In this document: one piece after another, positions 1 through 9,884 of the stretch
Numbering within the stretch: the first letter of the stretch is position 1
How the letters are laid out: every line of letters starts with the position of its first letter
Notes under the pieces: generated by a model
Told to the model about the DNA's origin: nothing
What the model saw: the letters and a program-made list of their open reading frames with translations, nothing else
Databases searched by the model: none
Translations under genes and position numbers: made by a program
NCBI GenBank assembly: GCA_002794465.1
Contig: MTSL01000068.1
Span: 1-10,856 of the forward strand
Source: Paramicrosporidium saccamoebae KSL3
Taxonomy: Eukaryota > Fungi > Cryptomycota
Direction of reading: 5' to 3'
DNA: 10,856 nucleotides

Positions 1-173
1 CCCCCAGGAAGCACTAATAATCGACACGTCTCCTCCCACGGCTCCTGGCCGAGCATTATCGCCGTCACTGTTTTGATGTCGCAGCAATGTCCAACAGAGC
101 TGCGCAGAGAGTCGAGCGTACGATGCAGCGATTCGGGCGAAATGCCATTTCCCGAATACACTAGAACATTCAT
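1..173 (-). CDS. BPL1: Biotin-protein ligase (holocarboxylase synthetase), 5' part with BPL_N domain; continues off the left edge
   Basis: Manual translation from ATG at 173 gives MNVLVYSGNGISPESLHRTLDSLRSSVGHCCDIKTVTAIMLGQEPWEETCRLLVLPG(G). This matches the N-terminus of fungal Bpl1 as I recall it (yeast MNVLVYNGPG...EPW...VFPGG). There is an in-frame stop upstream and no earlier ATG. Not in the ORF track. Confidence 0.9.
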   Translation of the reverse strand, partial: MNVLVYSGNGISPESLHRTLDSLRSSVGHCCDIKTVTAIMLGQEPWEETCRLLVLPG

Positions 174-426: not shown

Positions 427-1596
427 TTACCAATTCAACGGGTCGCTGTAGGCACTTGGGAATCTTAAATGGGCCCAAACAACCATATTATGATGACCAT
501 CTTCACGGGCCTTTGCCAGCGCATCTTTGCTTGGTGGATTCATCTCGGGATTACAGTAGGCACACCATTTTAGAAAGCTCCAATATCCTCTTGAAGCGGC
601 AGTGTCGATTTGGGATTGTCTCAGCCCACATTTGGGCTCGAGAATAACTATACAATATTGGTACCATTTTTTCAGGCAAAATTCGAGAACACTGAAATAA
701 TTCAACTTTTGGGCTCTTAGGAGTGCAAGTCTGCTGGGTTGCAGCTTAGGATTCTTAAAAAAGTAAAATTTCAACGCGTCTTTCCATCCATAGGCGCAAG
801 CTTCATCAATGTCCTCTTGACTCGGTCTCCAGTCCGGGTTGGACTTGATGATTTGTTCAAAGGCTTCGTAGCTTTTATTCTTGATCAAGAGGCTGAGCCA
901 ATAAGCCGAGGGTACCTTTGCCACCTTGTTCAAAAGATACAGCAAGCTGGCCTTTGCGTTGCATTTGATTGCAATGTGAACAGAAGTCATGCATGGTGTC
1001 CAGATTTCTCTTTTAATATATTCTTCAAGAGCATAGATATTTTCAGCTTTGATTGCAAATTCCAGATTGAAATTAATGTTGGTGCGCCCCCTATGCAGCG
1101 TTAGGATTCGCAGGGGACATAATCCATAAGTTTTTTTCATCCTGTCCGAATTGAACACTGCCAGTTGGGACCACGTTCTTGCAAGACCGACGGCATCATA
1201 TTTGGCCAATTTAACGGGGTCCATCACCTTGTGGCCAATGGATGGTGGCAAATCGTCAACGAACGCTGGGTTGTCGGCAAGTACGATGGAATCGATATTG
1301 TCTTCCAGGTCCGCTGTCGAAACCAAACTAGCGTTGGCTTGCCAACAGGTTTTGTAATATGCAGCAGTGTACCACACCCGCTTCTCGGCAGACACTATGT
1401 GCAGATTAGGGATTTTCTCTAAAAGGTCCCGTCTGTTATCCCTTACCATTCGTTCGATAGTCGCCTTGAATGCTTCAAGCGTCTGGTCTTTTGAAAAATC
1501 CCAAAAATTCGACTTTCTAGGAGCGATTCCCGAAAAAGAACTCGATATGAGCTTGAGCAAGACGGAAAGGCACAACGCAACGAGCAATAGCCTCAT
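427..1596 (-). CDS. Putative secreted protein (389 aa): signal peptide, uncharacterised N-terminal domain, ~7 degenerate ankyrin-like repeats (paralogue 1)
   Basis: Intronless ORF. I place the start at ATG 1596 (ACCATGA; MRLLLVALCLSVLLKLISSSFS, signal-peptide-like) rather than 1758, because it aligns with the paralogue start. The C-terminal half has ~28-31 aa units such as PSQEDIDEACAYGWKDALKFY, QSQIDTAASRGYWSFLKW and PSKDALAKAREDGHHNMVVW. About 59% identical to paralogue 2 (hand count 230/389). Confidence 0.8.
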   Translation of the reverse strand: MRLLLVALCLSVLLKLISSSFSGIAPRKSNFWDFSKDQTLEAFKATIERMVRDNRRDLLEKIPNLHIVSAEKRVWYTAAYYKTCWQANASLVSTADLEDNIDSIVLADNPAFVDDLPPSIGHKVMDPVKLAKYDAVGLARTWSQLAVFNSDRMKKTYGLCPLRILTLHRGRTNINFNLEFAIKAENIYALEEYIKREIWTPCMTSVHIAIKCNAKASLLYLLNKVAKVPSAYWLSLLIKNKSYEAFEQIIKSNPDWRPSQEDIDEACAYGWKDALKFYFFKNPKLQPSRLALLRAQKLNYFSVLEFCLKKWYQYCIVILEPKCGLRQSQIDTAASRGYWSFLKWCAYCNPEMNPPSKDALAKAREDGHHNMVVWAHLRFPSAYSDPLNW

Positions 1597-1648
1597 GGTG
1601 AACGGGATTCTCGATCCACCCGCACGGCAATTTATCCGTGGAGGACTG

Positions 1649-1658
1649 CAATGATTGG
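1649..1658 (-). promoter_or_regulatory. CCAAT box (CCAATCATTG) upstream of paralogue 1
   Basis: Reads GACCAATCAT on the - strand, matching the NF-Y/HAP consensus. It ends ~55 nt before the ATG, with the same sequence and spacing as in paralogue 2. Confidence 0.6.
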
Positions 1659-1940
1659 TCGAATAATAAGCCCGAGTGCAGAAATACATTAAGAATACTG
1701 GGTCGCGCTGTAAACAGCCGGAAGGGCTCTCTAACCAGTATGCCAGTTCTATTAGCATGAGCCCAACTGTCTGTTATTTAGTCGAGCAGCTGAAAATTGC
1801 AGATAGGACAAGACTATTGGCCCATCACATTTAAAGGTGACACTGCCTATTAGACCCAGTGCACGACTCTTTAGATGATCGCTCTAGTCAATGTGACTTT
1901 ACTAAGTAGATGCCGACCAGTTATCGCTAATACTTTTATG

Positions 1941-1946
1941 TTTATT
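1941..1946 (-). terminator. AATAAA polyadenylation signal of paralogue 2
   Basis: TTTATT on the + strand, 22 nt past the stop codon. Confidence 0.55.
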
Positions 1947-1968
1947 GTAGTGTGCTGTTGCCTACCAA

Positions 1969-3129
1969 TTAAACGAGGTCGTTATAGACACCCGGAAATC
2001 TTGAGTAGGTCCAATCAATAACATTGTGATGGCCACTTTTACGAGCCTCCCCCAACGCATCCCTGCTTGGTGGAAGCATACTGGGGTTGCAGTCGGCGCA
2101 CCATCCCAAAAAGCGCCAGTTTCCTCTTGCGGCGGCATTGTCGATTTGAAATTGTTTCAACGCACAGCTGGGTTTAAGCGTAGCTAGACAATACTGATAC
2201 CATCTTTCCAGGGAAAATTCAAGAACGCCAAAGCGGTTCAATAGTTGTGCTTTTAAAAGTGCAGCGCTGCTGGGACGTTTGTCAGGATTCATACCAAAGT
2301 AAAATTTCAACACGCTTTCCCACCCATAGGCGCAGGCTTCATCAATATCCTCTTGGCTCGGTTCCCATCCTGGGTTAGATTCTTTGATATACTCAAGAGC
2401 TTCGTGCCAATTCTTAGTAATCAAGAGATCGAGCCAGTAAGCTGAGGGTATTTTCTGCACCTTTTTCAGTAGATATAGTAGGCTGTTTTTTGCATTGCAT
2501 TTGATCGCGATATAAATATTATCCATGCATGGTGTCCAGACCTCTTCTTTAATGTAACGGTCAAGAGTGGAGAGTTGGTTATTTTTTATCGCAGATTCCA
2601 GGTTAAAGCTCTCCCTTTTGCGAGCCTCAATCAACTCTAGAATTTTTGGAGGAGATAATTTACGCTGCTTCATCTTCTCAGACTCGAATACCTCCAAGTG
2701 CGACCACGTCTTTGCAAGACCCACAGCATCATATTGGGCGAGTAACATTGGGTTTGTCAACATAGAACTAATGGATGGTGGCAAGTCAGCGACAAACTTT
2801 GAGTTGTCTGCAAGCACGATGGAATCAATATTACTTTCCAGGTCCTTTGTTGAAACCAAACCAGCGTTGGCTTGCCAACAGGTTTTGTAATATGCAGCAG
2901 TGTACCACACCTGCTTATCAACGGATAACATGTGCATATCAGGCATATTCTTTAGGATGTCCCGGCAGTTACGCTTTACCATTTGTCTTACGGTCACCCT
3001 GAATTTTTCAAGCGTTTGGCCCTTAGAAAACTCCCAAAAGTTCTGTTCCTTCGTATCAATTTTCAAAGAAGCTCCATAGGTAAGCTTGTTTGAAAGGAAA
3101 AGACAGAATGCAACGAGCGACAGCTTCAT
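1969..3129 (-). CDS. Putative secreted protein (386 aa): signal peptide, uncharacterised N-terminal domain, ~7 degenerate ankyrin-like repeats (paralogue 2)
   Basis: Intronless ORF. Start at ATG 3129 (ACCATGA; MKLSLVAFCLFLSNKLTYGA); the track start at 3156 is a GTG. Collinear with paralogue 1, with a single 1-aa internal gap. Confidence 0.82.
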   Translation of the reverse strand: MKLSLVAFCLFLSNKLTYGASLKIDTKEQNFWEFSKGQTLEKFRVTVRQMVKRNCRDILKNMPDMHMLSVDKQVWYTAAYYKTCWQANAGLVSTKDLESNIDSIVLADNSKFVADLPPSISSMLTNPMLLAQYDAVGLAKTWSHLEVFESEKMKQRKLSPPKILELIEARKRESFNLESAIKNNQLSTLDRYIKEEVWTPCMDNIYIAIKCNAKNSLLYLLKKVQKIPSAYWLDLLITKNWHEALEYIKESNPGWEPSQEDIDEACAYGWESVLKFYFGMNPDKRPSSAALLKAQLLNRFGVLEFSLERWYQYCLATLKPSCALKQFQIDNAAARGNWRFLGWCADCNPSMLPPSRDALGEARKSGHHNVIDWTYSRFPGVYNDLV

Positions 3130-3350: not shown

Positions 3351-3408
3351 TGTGACGTAGAGGACTGATTAGTTGGCTATGTGACGTAGAGGGTTGATTA
3401 GTTGGGTA
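3351..3408. repeat. Tandem 29-nt repeat x2, each unit with a CRE/ATF-like TGACGT
   Basis: TGTGACGTAGAGGACTGATTAGTTGGCTA (3351-3379) versus TGTGACGTAGAGGGTTGATTAGTTGGGTA (3380-3408), 26/29 identical. Confidence 0.85.
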
Positions 3409-3731
3409 TTTGAGTGGTAGAGTGGATCGCTTTGCTGAGTATTTGAGGACAGTGAGATGTGTATCCATATTATTCTAGGATTAGCAGTAAACAGGCTCTC
3501 TTCTCGCCTAAACTGGGCCGTGGTATTATCCCCACTACGCGACAAGTCTGTTAAACAGTATCCGTTTGTTATCAGTCGGGCCGACCCAGATAGCGGTCCC
3601 ACAGGCCAGTTTGGTTATATTAAGAATGGCTACCTATATGCCACATACTTTTGTAAGAACAAGCTCACCCATCAACGCAGTCTTTAAAGCAATTTTACGA
3701 CTCGGCTTCAATGACCAATAATTTAACGTCT

Positions 3732-6407: not shown

Positions 6408-8029
6408 TTAGTAGAATTTCAGATCCGGCGCTATGTGAAAGGGACATTCTGTAGAGGCCTTGATCTGTTCCACAGTAACCTCTTGGGCCAACTCTACCAA
6501 CGTTAATCCTTTAGTTTGGTCCACATCAAAGACACACTAAAACAAAAGAACACATTAGGAGATTACCAAGTCAGTGATGATTCGATCAACGCAGGCCCGT
6601 CCAGTCAAAGGTAGCCTACATTCTTTCAGGATCTTTGGCTTTCCACTCCGACTGACATGCTCCATTGTGATGACGATCCGGGCGCCACTTGCTGCCAAGT
6701 CCATTGCCCCGCCCATTCCCTTGACCATCTTTCCTGGAATGATCCAGTTGGCCAAGTCCCCAAACTGGGACACTTCCATTGCTCCCAAAATGCTCAGTTG
6801 CACATGACCCCTAAACCGTCAATCACCAGCGCTATGACGCACCCGCGAATCATTGCAAAGGAGTCATCGCTGGCAAAATAAGATGCACCCGGCAGGACAG
6901 TGACAGTCTCTTTTCCCGCATTGATCAGTTCCGGATCGACTTGATTCTTTGCAGGAAAAGGACCCAAACCCAAAATGCCATTCTCACTCTGCAGATGCAC
7001 CGTCATCCCCTCGGGAATGTAATTGCTCGCCAACATTGGCATTCCGATTCCCAAATTGACGCACATTCCATCACTAAATTCCTTTGCTGCTCTTTGCACA
7101 ATCCTCTCTCGCTTAGAGTCCTGGTCGGTTGTTTTGTTACTAGCGAGGGTTAATCTTTCGATTCGTTTTTCGTATCCCTTACCCAGGACCAACTTGTCAA
7201 TGTATATTCCTGGGAGATGGATGGCTTCGGGATCCAATTGTCCCATTGGGACAATCTCCTCCACCTCGGCAATTGCCACTTTTGCAGCCCGTGCCATCAA
7301 TGGATTGAAATTCCTGGCCGTCTTTCTGAACAGCAAGTTTCCAGTCTCATCCGCCTTCCAAGCTTTCAAAAGGCCGTAATCGCCGGTAATGGACTCTTCC
7401 ATTATATACTTTTGGCCCTTAAACTCGCGTTCCTACAATTAGGGACAGCCAGGACACGGTACTTCTCGTGGCTTGCTGGTAACCGCGGGCTTTCCATCTT
7501 TGGTATGACGGATCACTAGGGATCCCTTCATAATGTCTGTGCCCACTCCGGTCTGTGTGTAGAATGCCGGTATGCCTGCGCCACCCGCCCGTAGTCTCTC
7601 CGCCAAGGTGCCCTATAGCTCAGTATGTGCGGCGTTGGTACCTGCGGGGTCAACTCTACATCCAACTCGCCCGTCAAATACTGACGCTCAAACTCTTCAT
7701 TCTCCCCAACATAGGACGACACCATCTTTTTAATCTGTTTGCTCTTGAGCATCACTCCCAATCCAAAGTCATCCACGCTACAACTTGGGATAGCCTTTAT
7801 GGTGATACCCTGCATTGTTGCTGACTACTGTCAATCCCGACAGGTCCCTTCTCGAGTGCATGGCGGCTATTAGCTTTTCCGGTATTCCGCATAATCCAAA
7901 ACCACCCACCAGGATAGTAGAGCCGCTTGCAATACTGCGCACCGCCTCTTCTGCAGTCACCACCGGCTTTCGCTCAGAAGAGTACCATCTCTGAACCAAG
8001 CGCACTAACAGTCCCCGCGATGTGTTCAT
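6408..8029 (-). CDS. OXCT1: Mitochondrial succinyl-CoA:3-oxoacid CoA-transferase (SCOT), canonical copy 1, 489 aa; exons 8029-7809, 7777-7642, 7612-7463, 7432-6843, 6810-6567, 6536-6408
   Basis: Five 29-32-nt GT-AG introns join the fragmentary ORFs into one 1470-nt frame. Motifs [39 protein letters not shown], catalytic QSENG and KGMGGAMDL are present. The Arg-rich, acid-free N-terminus ([18 protein letters not shown]) resembles a mitochondrial presequence. Confidence 0.93.
6537..6566 (-). other. Intron 5 of SCOT copy 1, 30 nt
   Basis: GTAATCTCCTAATGTGTTCTTTTGTTTTAG, phase 0, joins IITDL to CVFDV. Confidence 0.88.
6811..6842 (-). other. Intron 4 of SCOT copy 1, 32 nt
   Basis: GTGCGTCATAGCGCTGGTGATTGACGGTTTAG, phase 2, within MIRG/GH. 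Confidence 0.88.
7433..7462 (-). other. Intron 3 of SCOT copy 1, 30 nt
   Basis: GTACCGTGTCCTGGCTGTCCCTAATTGTAG, phase 0, joins KPRE to EREF. Confidence 0.88.
7613..7641 (-). other. Intron 2 of SCOT copy 1, 29 nt
   Basis: GTACCAACGCCGCACATACTGAGCTATAG, phase 0, joins LTPQ to GTLAE. Confidence 0.9.
7778..7808 (-). other. Intron 1 of SCOT copy 1, 31 nt
   Basis: GTATCACCATAAAGGCTATCCCAAGTTGTAG, phase 2, within SNNAG/VDDFG. Confidence 0.88.
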
Positions 8030-8064: not shown

Positions 8065-9656
8065 TCAGAATGTCCCCAATTTGGGAGCCACGGTGAATGG
8101 ACAGCCCGTCTTGCTTCGAAGGGAATCTATCGTTTCGCTACTGACCTTTTCCACCAAAGTCAGTCCCTTTTGGGGATGTACATCAAACACTGCCAACTCG
8201 GTTATTATGCGTTTCACACATTTCGGCGCCGTGAGGGGCAAACTGCATTTGGAAACAATCTTGGGCCGTCCATCCTTGGAGAGATGTGTCATGGTTACAA
8301 TGATTGTACTTCCAGAATTTGCCAGATCCATGGCACCTCCCATGCCCTTGACAATCTTTCCCGGGATAATCCAATTAGCCAAATCGCCAAACTCACTCAC
8401 CTCAAATGCGCCCAACATGCTCATGTCGAAATGGCCCCTATTTGGTCAGTGTTTGTTCATCCCAGTTACCCTCTGATCATTGCAAATGATTCGTCGCTGG
8501 AAAAATAGGATGCACCGGCGTAGACAGTCACCGTCTCCTTTCCAGCATTCACCAAGTCGGGGTCGACCTCTTCTGGCCTTGGAAAGGGTCCCTATGGTCA
8601 GAGTCTTTTCCTTTGGAGCTACTAATCCAAGAACGCCATTCTCGCTGTCAATGTTTATACTCGCGTTTTTTGGTATGAAATTGCTTGCATGTTCTGGCAT
8701 TCCAATCCCCAAATTCACTAGGATCATAACACGGTATTGCGCACCTTACCGTACATTCCGGTTCTAAATTCCTTTGCAGCTCTCCTGGCAATTTTTTCTC
8801 TGGGCGGCATTGTCCCCTTGGGTGTTTCCTTTTCAGCATCCCCATCTCTTGAAACGGTCAAGTGCATAATCTGCTTCTCATATTTTCCTCCCAAGACCAT
8901 TCCGTCCACGTAGATTCCGGGGAGGTGAATCTCATCTGGATCAATTGCCCCCGTCGGCACCAACTCTTCTACCTCTACTAACGTAGTCCTCGCAGCCTTG
9001 GCCATCACCGGGTTGAAGTTGCGTGCCGTCTCTCTAAATACCAAATTTCCAAATTCGTCTCCTTTCCAGGCCTTTATCAACGCCACATCACCGGTGCGGG
9101 CGTGTTCTTGGAGATAATCGTGTCCGTTCCAGGACAGAGTGTTCTTTTTGGGAATGCATGTTCCGTTGGAGTAATTGGTGACCAAATCTCCGTTGGCGTA
9201 GATTGTGCCGGCGCCGCTTCGGGTGTAGAAAATGGGGATTCCTGCCCCTCCCGCCCGAAGAGATTCTGCAATCGTTCCCTAAGCGCTCAGGAAGCCCGTC
9301 TTCTTTACCTGAGGAACAAGGTCAATCTCCAATTTTCCCTCCAAATAATCCTTGACGCATTGTCGGTTTTCACCAATGTAAGAGGCGGTAACTTTTGAGA
9401 CTTTTCCTTCCCTGATCAGTGGCCCAATGCCGAAATCTTCTGTTCCCGTGTCGTTGCTGACAATTTTCAAGTCGGTCACATTCCTCTTTGCCAAAGCCTT
9501 TAGCATCTTTTCGGGAATTCCCGTCAAGCCAAAGCCACCCACTAACAAGGTAGCACCGCTTTTGATGGATGCCGCAGCTTGACTGGCCGACAAAAGCGGC
9601 TTCCGAAAGATTCTCCCATTCGAATGGATTGCAAACCAGCGTCTAATCACAGTCAT
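8065..9656 (-). CDS. SCOT-family (family I) CoA-transferase, diverged copy 2, 488 aa; exons 9656-9309, 9278-8750, 8717-8623, 8591-8470, 8437-8065
   Basis: Four 30-32-nt GT-AG introns give one 1467-nt frame. Retains GGFG, SYIGEN, NLGIG, catalytic SENG and KGMGGAMDL. Start at ATG 9656 ([19 protein letters not shown], presequence-like); the track start at 9668 is a TTG. About 55% identical to copy 1 (hand count). The family is certain; the substrate is not. Confidence 0.9.
8438..8469 (-). other. Intron 4 of copy 2, 32 nt
   Basis: GTAACTGGGATGAACAAACACTGACCAAATAG, phase 2, within MIRG/GH (same site as copy 1 intron 4). Confidence 0.88.
8592..8622 (-). other. Intron 3 of copy 2, 31 nt
   Basis: GTAGCTCCAAAGGAAAAGACTCTGACCATAG, phase 0, joins VLGL to GPFP. 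Confidence 0.88.
8718..8749 (-). other. Intron 2 of copy 2, 32 nt
   Basis: GTAAGGTGCGCAATACCGTGTTATGATCCTAG, phase 1, within GMY-V-NLGIG. Confidence 0.88.
9279..9308 (-). other. Intron 1 of copy 2, 30 nt
   Basis: GTAAAGAAGACGGGCTTCCTGAGCGCTTAG, phase 0, joins LVPQ to GTIAE (same site as copy 1 intron 2). Confidence 0.9.
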
Positions 9657-9884
9657 GCCACAACCCAATCTAATAAAGCCTGATAGAGCGACTTGTAGAC
9701 CGATTCAGGCCAGCATTAAATATTGCCAAATCTGCTATCATGCCCTCATCATATTAGGCCGACGCGGCGACCGGATGAGTCGAAATACTCTAAATATTTA
9801 CAATCTTTATAACATTGGTCGACCTTTGGAAAGTGTGAGATGCTGAATTCGGGAGGATATGCTCGACTGTAACTTACAAATTGA

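Follow-up and report, generated by a model that had tools for sequence, protein, structure and literature searches.

The 10,856-bp window analysed here is one complete contig (MTSL01000068.1) of Paramicrosporidium saccamoebae, a member of the Rozellomycota that grows as a parasite inside the nucleus of Saccamoeba (PMC5701793), and it carries two adjoining paralogous genes, called A and B in this article, which are two functional members of a real, hitherto undescribed, lineage-specific family. The structural description of their products, namely a signal-peptide-like N-terminus, an N-terminal domain (N-domain) and a series of ankyrin-type repeats, is given with high confidence, and from their sequences the members of this family appear to be plausible candidate host-directed proteins. 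An original prediction, made from the DNA letters alone, had proposed a tandem pair of secreted ankyrin-like proteins from a compact-genome endoparasite, and the source organism is indeed an endoparasite of amoebae with a compact genome.

Genes A and B are arranged head to tail on the minus strand as uninterrupted open reading frames (ORFs), found exactly where the pair had been proposed, and the predicted amino acid identity of ~59% compares with 230 identical residues out of 385 (60%) in a BLASTP alignment with E 2e-174 and a single gap. The ratio of nonsynonymous to synonymous substitution rates (dN/dS) between them is 0.32, being 0.41 over the N-domain and 0.26 over the repeats, with dS 0.86; between A or B and metagenomic copies it is 0.2-0.35. 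A dN/dS of ~0.3 indicates that A and B are both kept by selection and functional, and a dS of ~0.9 that their duplication is old.

The deposited model of gene A (PSACC_00888, P0001) comprises 274 aa and is flagged partial: it lacks aa 148-169, because a 66-nt in-frame GT..AG stretch was modelled as an intron, and it ends early, dropping ~94 final codons of the ORF (427-710, minus strand). The 22 residues encoded by this stretch are conserved in B and in the metagenomic homologues P0003 and P0004, with eight invariant positions, and they form helices with a predicted local distance difference test (pLDDT) score above 90 in the AlphaFold2 model. The stretch is therefore probably coding and the uninterrupted ORF is taken as the true product of A, which corrects the deposited gene model and favors the intronless structure originally claimed for both genes over the spliced NCBI version of A. 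At the 5' end, the open frame of A continues upstream of ATG 1596 to 1758, where another in-frame ATG is located 54 codons away. Since the paralogues all start with the common motif M-[KR]-L-x-L-V-A-x-C-L and B, like other members, has no in-frame upstream ATG, ATG 1596 and not ATG 1758 is likely the start of A, judging from this comparison.

The N-termini of A and B were evaluated heuristically, according to n-h-c organization, Kyte-Doolittle hydropathy and the -3/-1 rule. In both proteins a positive n-region (MR/MK) is followed by a hydrophobic core of ~12 residues and by small residues at -3/-1 near positions 19-21. The top Kyte-Doolittle nine-residue window of the entire A protein (3.01) lies within residues 4-14, and in A, B and a third copy encoded on a metagenome contig the protein-wide hydrophobic maximum is found at residues 3-14, with Arg or Lys before the core and -3/-1-type small residues at 18-22. 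A hydropathy scan of the whole A and B proteins revealed no second hydrophobic segment, and their C-termini (...SDPLNW and ...YNDLV) do not bear a K/HDEL motif. The N-terminal pattern is kept in 14 family members, including paralogues that are ~30% identical and the subfamily devoid of the N-domain, and is missing from two cytosolic proteins encoded in the window that served as controls, the asparaginyl-tRNA synthetase (AsnRS) and CHS5; about 8 of the 11 P. saccamoebae loci counted within the family start in this manner. In the AlphaFold model, residues 13-29 of A show low pLDDT and remain unstructured and apart from the fold. By this heuristic the N-terminus of A and B looks like a cleavable Sec-type signal peptide with a predicted cleavage at ~19-21, in line with what had been proposed for it.

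The segment that follows is an all-alpha domain of ~145 aa. The original prediction had mentioned an unrecognised domain of ~120 aa at this position, and the domain is real and unrecognised, but longer than was claimed. AlphaFold2 run on a 19-sequence alignment models it in A with pLDDT values of 74-97 by 10-residue block, most of them above 85, and supersedes a run with 4 sequences in which the pLDDT of the domain was below 50. Conserved positions include F43, W75-Y76, A78, T83, W85, A107-D108-N109, Y133-D134-A135 and T141, and there is no cysteine conserved across the family. No Pfam match was obtained for the domain at E<=1 and no PDB sequence match, and a profile search of PDB sequences returned only noise (a MAPK at E 0.08 and a designed ankyrin repeat protein, DARPin, at E 0.32). 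The possibility that the domain is a degenerate extension of the repeats was rejected, given hhalign probabilities of 0.4% against the repeats and of at most 0.4% against ankyrin proteins. On these comparisons the N-domain appears to be novel, with no homologue detected beyond the family.

Within the family, the N-domain is carried by A, B, PSACC_01272, PSACC_00226, PSACC_01907, PSACC_02050 (partially), several proteins from JGI and Logan contigs and, in two copies, by P0051, for which the match was accepted with an hhalign probability of 91.8% and a hidden Markov model (HMM) E of 9e-12. A partial match in P0058 was rejected (hhalign probability 3%). The protein P0051 (L006 233-2377, Logan DRR438482) is a distant member that combines a signal peptide, two tandem N-domains and Pfam-positive ankyrin repeats, and its gene adjoins a Cdc6/ORC1 gene on a compact contig of eukaryotic type. 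This protein indicates that duplication of the N-domain can occur and that the domain predates the A/B clade.

The C-terminal part of both proteins is predicted to be a helical-repeat solenoid. The AlphaFold2 model of A (pLDDT 87.7; predicted template modelling score 0.77) shows the region from residue 178 to residue 378 as a series of seven regular helix-turn-helix pairs with pLDDT ~90, located at residues 178-183/187-195, 203-211/215-225, 231-239/243-252, 260-268/272-281, 289-297/301-318, 327-335/339-348 and 357-365/369-378, and the unit lengths are 27, 28, 29, 29, 40, 28 and 35 aa. Together with the self-alignment of the repeat profile, the model confirms the approximately seven short repeats read from the DNA, and the predicted fold is not of the non-solenoid kind that would have spoken against them. 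The self-alignment is much stronger at a two-unit offset (probability 99.4%, E 1.2e-21, well beyond chance) than at any other, which indicates that the solenoid is an alternating a/b super-repeat in which units of ~28 aa with the pattern ID.A...G....L.W alternate with longer units of ~29-40 aa. The repeat core A-x3-G-x4-L-x-[WFY] is kept, no TPLH motif or canonical 33-residue unit was found among the units of A and B, and the repeat model contains no beta-hairpin.

The assignment of these repeats to the ankyrin type has to be weighed against several observations that speak against it. Neither A nor B matches any Pfam family at E<=1, ankyrin models included, and an oomycete-type unit HMM, built from 64 short 28-aa ankyrin units of Pfam-positive proteins, scores them at 1.6-2.7 bits, below the maximum of 7.0 bits reached by shuffled sequences (n = 1,000). 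The structural matches obtained with Foldseek are weak (E 1.5e-3 to 0.03, the best PDB match being 0.028; template modelling score at most 0.47; high root-mean-square deviation), and pentatricopeptide (PPR) and tetratricopeptide repeat (TPR) solenoids also occur in the PDB list; it follows that the geometry of the solenoid is non-canonical. As there is no Pfam match and the unit HMM fails, the ankyrin call rests on profile-profile comparison, on transitive evidence and on the weak Foldseek matches.

Several relatives provide the connection. The Pfam Ank_4 cut-off of 22.7 bits is passed by P0024 (39.6 bits), P0026 (45.3 bits) and P0051 (26.4 bits). In hhalign comparisons, a repeat profile of 15 sequences matched the paralogue PSACC_03376 (P0024; Ank_4 E 5.8e-10) with a probability of 98.4%, P0027 (Ank_4 E 4e-62) with 97.3% (E 2e-11 over 198 columns) and P0032 of Pythium oligandrum with 95.8%; the value against the canonical DARPin consensus was 51%. 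By hmmsearch, a profile of four family sequences matched Pfam-positive ankyrin proteins, including some of P. oligandrum and Cavenderia fasciculata, at E 3e-8 or weaker, and the weaker profile matches that were scanned are strong Pfam ankyrin proteins (Ank_4 E 1e-43 to 1e-72) in which up to nine stretches were matched. The top PDB matches in Foldseek are ankyrin-1, ankyrin-B, MIB1 and DARPins, with probabilities of 0.97-1.00, and ankyrin proteins from giant viruses of amoebae make up nearly all of the top 50 BFVD matches. Our reading is that the repeats genuinely belong to the short W-capped ankyrin type but have become strongly degenerate. The ankyrin-like character originally proposed is thus retained on the strength of profile-profile probabilities of 96-98% and weakly scoring fold matches, with no direct Pfam signal and a unit HMM that is not significant, and the W-capped type does occur elsewhere as had been stated, in the oomycete P. 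oligandrum, in the dictyostelid Cavenderia and, as judged from fold matches, in proteins of amoeba giant viruses. Pfam-negative hypothetical proteins appear in this case to be degenerate ankyrin solenoids, recoverable only by family-profile and structure methods.

To explore the distribution of the family, 1.84 billion representative proteins were searched with a profile built from its four closest sequences. Of the 83 matches obtained, ~25 are family members, all of them from P. saccamoebae or from environmental JGI/Logan contigs, and the ten weaker matches inspected proved to be generic ankyrin proteins or proteins to which no name could be given. No orthologue in other fungi was found among these representatives, a result that goes against the alternative of broadly conserved fungal proteins raised with the original prediction, and within this search the family is limited to the Paramicrosporidium lineage. 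Counting together the subfamily that has the N-domain and the one that lacks it, at least 11 loci occur in P. saccamoebae (PSACC_00888, B, PSACC_01272, 02050, 00226, 01907, 03337, 03376, 03379 and two more in the array described below), and the N-domain is present at 5-6 of them. Four head-to-tail paralogues without the N-domain, PSACC_03376 to PSACC_03379, form an array on contig MTSL01000206.1 (L003 9968-20361, plus strand), and a second tandem pair, head to tail and 200 bp apart, is found on a metagenome contig (L001, sample 3300042204). In the four-gene array, three of the genes start signal-peptide-like, and two of the gene models have overlapping frames, which suggests introns or frameshifts. 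PSACC_01272 (L004 3739-12050, MTSL01000095.1) sits among five Glyco_hydro_47 (alpha-mannosidase) gene models, which may form a true tandem array or may be pieces of a fragmented annotation.

A host-directed role of A and B, in which they would be secreted, come into contact with the host and bind a target there, is put forward as a tentative proposal to which nearly even weight is given, by analogy with precedents in microsporidia, plasmodiophorids and Chromulinavorax. The signal peptide would carry the proteins into the endoplasmic reticulum (ER) of the parasite and then out of the cell, and the mature proteins would meet the contents of the host nucleus, because P. saccamoebae grows within it. 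There the ankyrin-type solenoid may bind a host protein and the N-domain may add a second activity, while tandem duplication and divergence could yield paralogues of differing specificity. A more specific version, which we regard as possible but unlikely, is that of nucleomodulins: the signal peptide would release the protein into the amoeba nucleoplasm, the solenoid would capture a host nuclear protein, and the N-domain would be enzymatic or directed to chromatin or nucleic acid. That version places a new activity in the N-domain with its conserved WY.A, ADN and YDA motifs and, if true, would provide the first effector family defined for the Rozellomycota.

Some findings weigh against a host-directed role. 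Gene-wide positive or diversifying selection, which is often seen in effectors, was not detected (dN/dS 0.2-0.4, with dS near saturation). The gene ids of A and B are not mentioned in the genome paper of P. saccamoebae or its supplements (PMC5701793). In addition, a signal peptide would be just as expected in a protein of the spore wall, polar filament or surface, or in one that resides in the ER.

This last point leads to the main rival, according to which A and B are secretory but belong to the structure of the parasite itself, forming part of its spore wall, polar filament or surface, with the solenoid as an assembly scaffold and not as a module that binds the host. Spore-wall and polar-tube proteins of microsporidia also carry signal peptides, are clade-specific and are devoid of recognisable domains, and the moderate purifying selection on A and B (dN/dS ~0.3) would suit a structural role. 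Spores with a polar filament are formed by P. saccamoebae (PMC5701793). On the other hand, A and B have no transmembrane or glycosylphosphatidylinositol-like C-terminal hydrophobic segment, they are not low-complexity or Pro/Gly/Ser-rich as typical polar-tube proteins are, and the lack of a family-wide conserved cysteine would be unusual for extracellular wall proteins. Moreover, at least 11 diverged copies in tandem arrays are more typical of host-interaction families (PMC5423893). Such a structural role is considered unlikely, and if the proteins were spore-structural or ER-resident the finding would shrink to an ordinary lineage-specific repeat family.

It is quite improbable that the hydrophobic N-terminus is not secretory and that A and B are intracellular ankyrin-type scaffolds, type II membrane proteins or organelle proteins. 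Ankyrin proteins are overwhelmingly cytosolic or nuclear, and use of the in-frame ATG 1758 in A would make the hydrophobic segment internal, but a comparable upstream ATG is missing from B and from the other members, and the N-terminal pattern (M-K/R, ~12 hydrophobic residues, K, small residues) is kept across ~30%-identical paralogues of two subfamilies. The core of ~12-14 residues is also too short for a typical membrane anchor, and the N-terminal segment is left apart from the fold by AlphaFold.

Weakest is the idea, raised in general terms as a possibility in the original prediction, that the repeat module or the whole gene was gained horizontally in the amoebal niche, from the host amoeba, a giant virus or a co-resident protist, and then expanded: the nearest organism-assigned repeat matches outside the family are the W-capped ankyrins of P. 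oligandrum and C. fasciculata, a further match (P0028) is encoded on a compact, ORFan-rich, giant-virus-like contig (L005, Logan SRR19749267, 15.8 kb) and ankyrin proteins from giant viruses of amoebae lead the BFVD fold matches, but the non-family matches score weakly (E 1e-8 to 1e-3) and it is the repeat consensus that produces them, giant viruses dominate the ankyrin content of BFVD anyway, no donor of the N-domain was found among the 1.84 billion proteins, in PDB or by HMM comparisons, the guanine-cytosine (GC) content of A and B (0.43-0.46) lies inside the range of the remaining contig (0.42-0.53), the dS of ~0.9 and the ~30%-identical paralogues point to long residence, and a scan of viral contigs with the 4-sequence alignment revealed no relative, so that a horizontal origin finds no specific support and is very improbable. 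The contig of P0028, which is among the closest non-family ankyrin matches, is densely packed and carries a protein kinase gene, a context that looks giant-virus-like.

The Rozellomycota are the sister group of the microsporidia and a model for microsporidian origin, and we know of no previous account of host manipulation in them. The genome paper of P. saccamoebae is silent on secreted proteins, effectors and ankyrins (PMC5701793), and a literature search found no publication that links Paramicrosporidium with ankyrin. By analogy, the closest functional counterparts of A and B would be the secreted ankyrins of plasmodiophorids and the clade-specific signal-peptide families of microsporidia. 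In plasmodiophorids, secreted ankyrin families are expanded and constitute the largest cluster of the secretome, and one of these proteins binds the host MPK3 (PMC12503489). Like A and B, these proteins (PbANK1 of Plasmodiophora brassicae among them) belong to an obligate intracellular eukaryotic parasite, form a paralogous family of signal-peptide ankyrin-type proteins and have protein-protein binding as presumed role. Their repeats are canonical units of 32-33 aa, detected by Pfam and MEME and in some proteins fused to SKP1 or BTB (PMC12503489), whereas A and B have Pfam-invisible units of 27-40 aa, a two-unit super-repeat and an N-domain without homologues outside the family.

Signal-peptide proteins of microsporidia reach the host nucleus (PMC5423893). 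The NemLGF families described in that work share with the A/B family a close lineage, the signal peptide, clade restriction, paralogous expansion and local arrays, and most of their members, as in the A/B family, are without annotated domain. They differ in size and in the nature of the evidence, with 18-169 members and host exposure established by proximity labelling, as compared with at least 11 loci read from sequence, and also in content, since the microsporidian families include leucine-rich-repeat (LRR), kinase or novel domains and the word ankyrin is absent from the paper (PMC5423893). If the host-directed proposal for A and B holds, the rule derived for Nematocida, in which a signal peptide, clade specificity and paralogy are combined (PMC5423893), would be extended to the base of the lineage.

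By sequence, the closest proteins to A and B are the W-capped ankyrins of oomycetes, Amoebozoa and giant viruses (e.g., TMW58647.1 of P. oligandrum), with which they share a unit of ~28 aa, the core A-x3-G-H-x3-[VIL]-x-W, the absence of TPLH and profile-profile probabilities of 96-97%. The W-capped ankyrins, however, score 1e-40 to 1e-70 on Pfam Ank, where A and B score nothing, and the few examples inspected have no obvious signal peptide, unlike the N-terminus of A and B; PS/NP linkers and longer alternate units further distinguish A and B from them. Signal-peptide ankyrin proteins are also proposed effectors of Chromulinavorax, a pathogen of protists (PMC6561590). These proteins and the type IV Ank effectors of Legionella and Coxiella resemble the proposal made for A and B in that an intracellular parasite of protists exports ankyrin-type proteins that presumably manipulate processes of the host. 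The bacterial effectors differ in their export, by type IV secretion or by Sec and vesicles, and no sequence relationship to A and B was found. The homologue-free N-domain, the Pfam-invisible repeats, the two-unit super-repeat and the amoeba nucleus as host set the A/B family apart from these systems, and this clade-specific, tandemly expanding family supplies concrete candidates for the proteins by which a eukaryotic parasite living in the nucleus may interact with its host, and would offer a first look at putative effectors of Rozellomycota.

Table 1. Location of genes A and B and of their parts within the window
Feature	Coordinates	Strand	Basis
Gene A (deposited as PSACC_00888, partial)	427..1596	-	Full coding sequence, 389 aa + stop codon 427-429; ATG 1596
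Gene A, signal-peptide-like segment, aa 1-20 (MRLLLVALCLSVLLKLISSS)	1537..1596	-	Hydrophobic maximum; -3/-1 sites at 18-22
Gene A, N-terminal all-alpha domain, aa ~30-173, motifs WY.A, T.W, ADN, YDA	1078..1509	-	Model and family conservation
Gene A, 66-nt in-frame GT..AG stretch, intron in NCBI model, probably coding	1091..1156	-	Conserved in homologues; helical in model
Gene A, repeat region, aa 174-389, seven degenerate short ankyrin-type units	430..1077	-	Helix pairs, self-alignment, hhalign, Foldseek
Spacer between A and B, 372 bp, stop of B to start of A	1597..1968	-	ORF coordinates
Gene B, paralogue of A	1969..3129	-	Full coding sequence, 386 aa + stop codon 1969-1971; ATG 3129
Gene B, signal-peptide-like segment, aa 1-20 (MKLSLVAFCLFLSNKLTYGA)	3070..3129	-	Hydrophobic maximum at residues 3-13; -3/-1 sites 19, 21
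Gene B, N-terminal all-alpha domain, aa ~30-172	2614..3042	-	N-domain HMM E 5.5e-66
Gene B, repeat region, aa 173-386, seven short ankyrin-type units	1972..2613	-	Collinear with A; C-terminal HMM E 9e-100

The spacer between the two genes is presumed to contain the promoter and 5' untranslated region of A, and a repeat search found no promoter motif common to the upstream regions of A and B. As originally described, the pair is placed in housekeeping surroundings, its neighbors on the contig being, according to Pfam, the genes for AsnRS, a CG6151-P membrane protein, two CoA-transferases and CHS5. At the contig end, positions 1-171 (minus strand) hold the 5' part of a further gene (MNVLVYSGNGISPESLHRTLDSL...), cut by the end and without Pfam match, which we presume to resemble the N-terminus of biotin-protein ligase. 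Downstream of gene A (218-297) there is a direct repeat of 40 nt in tandem, and a 29-nt tandem repeat in 2-3 copies (3351-3408, with 3421-3447) lies between gene B and the divergently oriented AsnRS gene; these repeats may be regulatory or mere repeat slippage. The two CoA-transferase genes, at 6555-8029 and 8065-9668 (both minus strand), are in tandem, contain introns and match Pfam CoA_trans; they look like succinyl-CoA:3-ketoacid transferase and represent a second tandem duplication on the contig of A and B.

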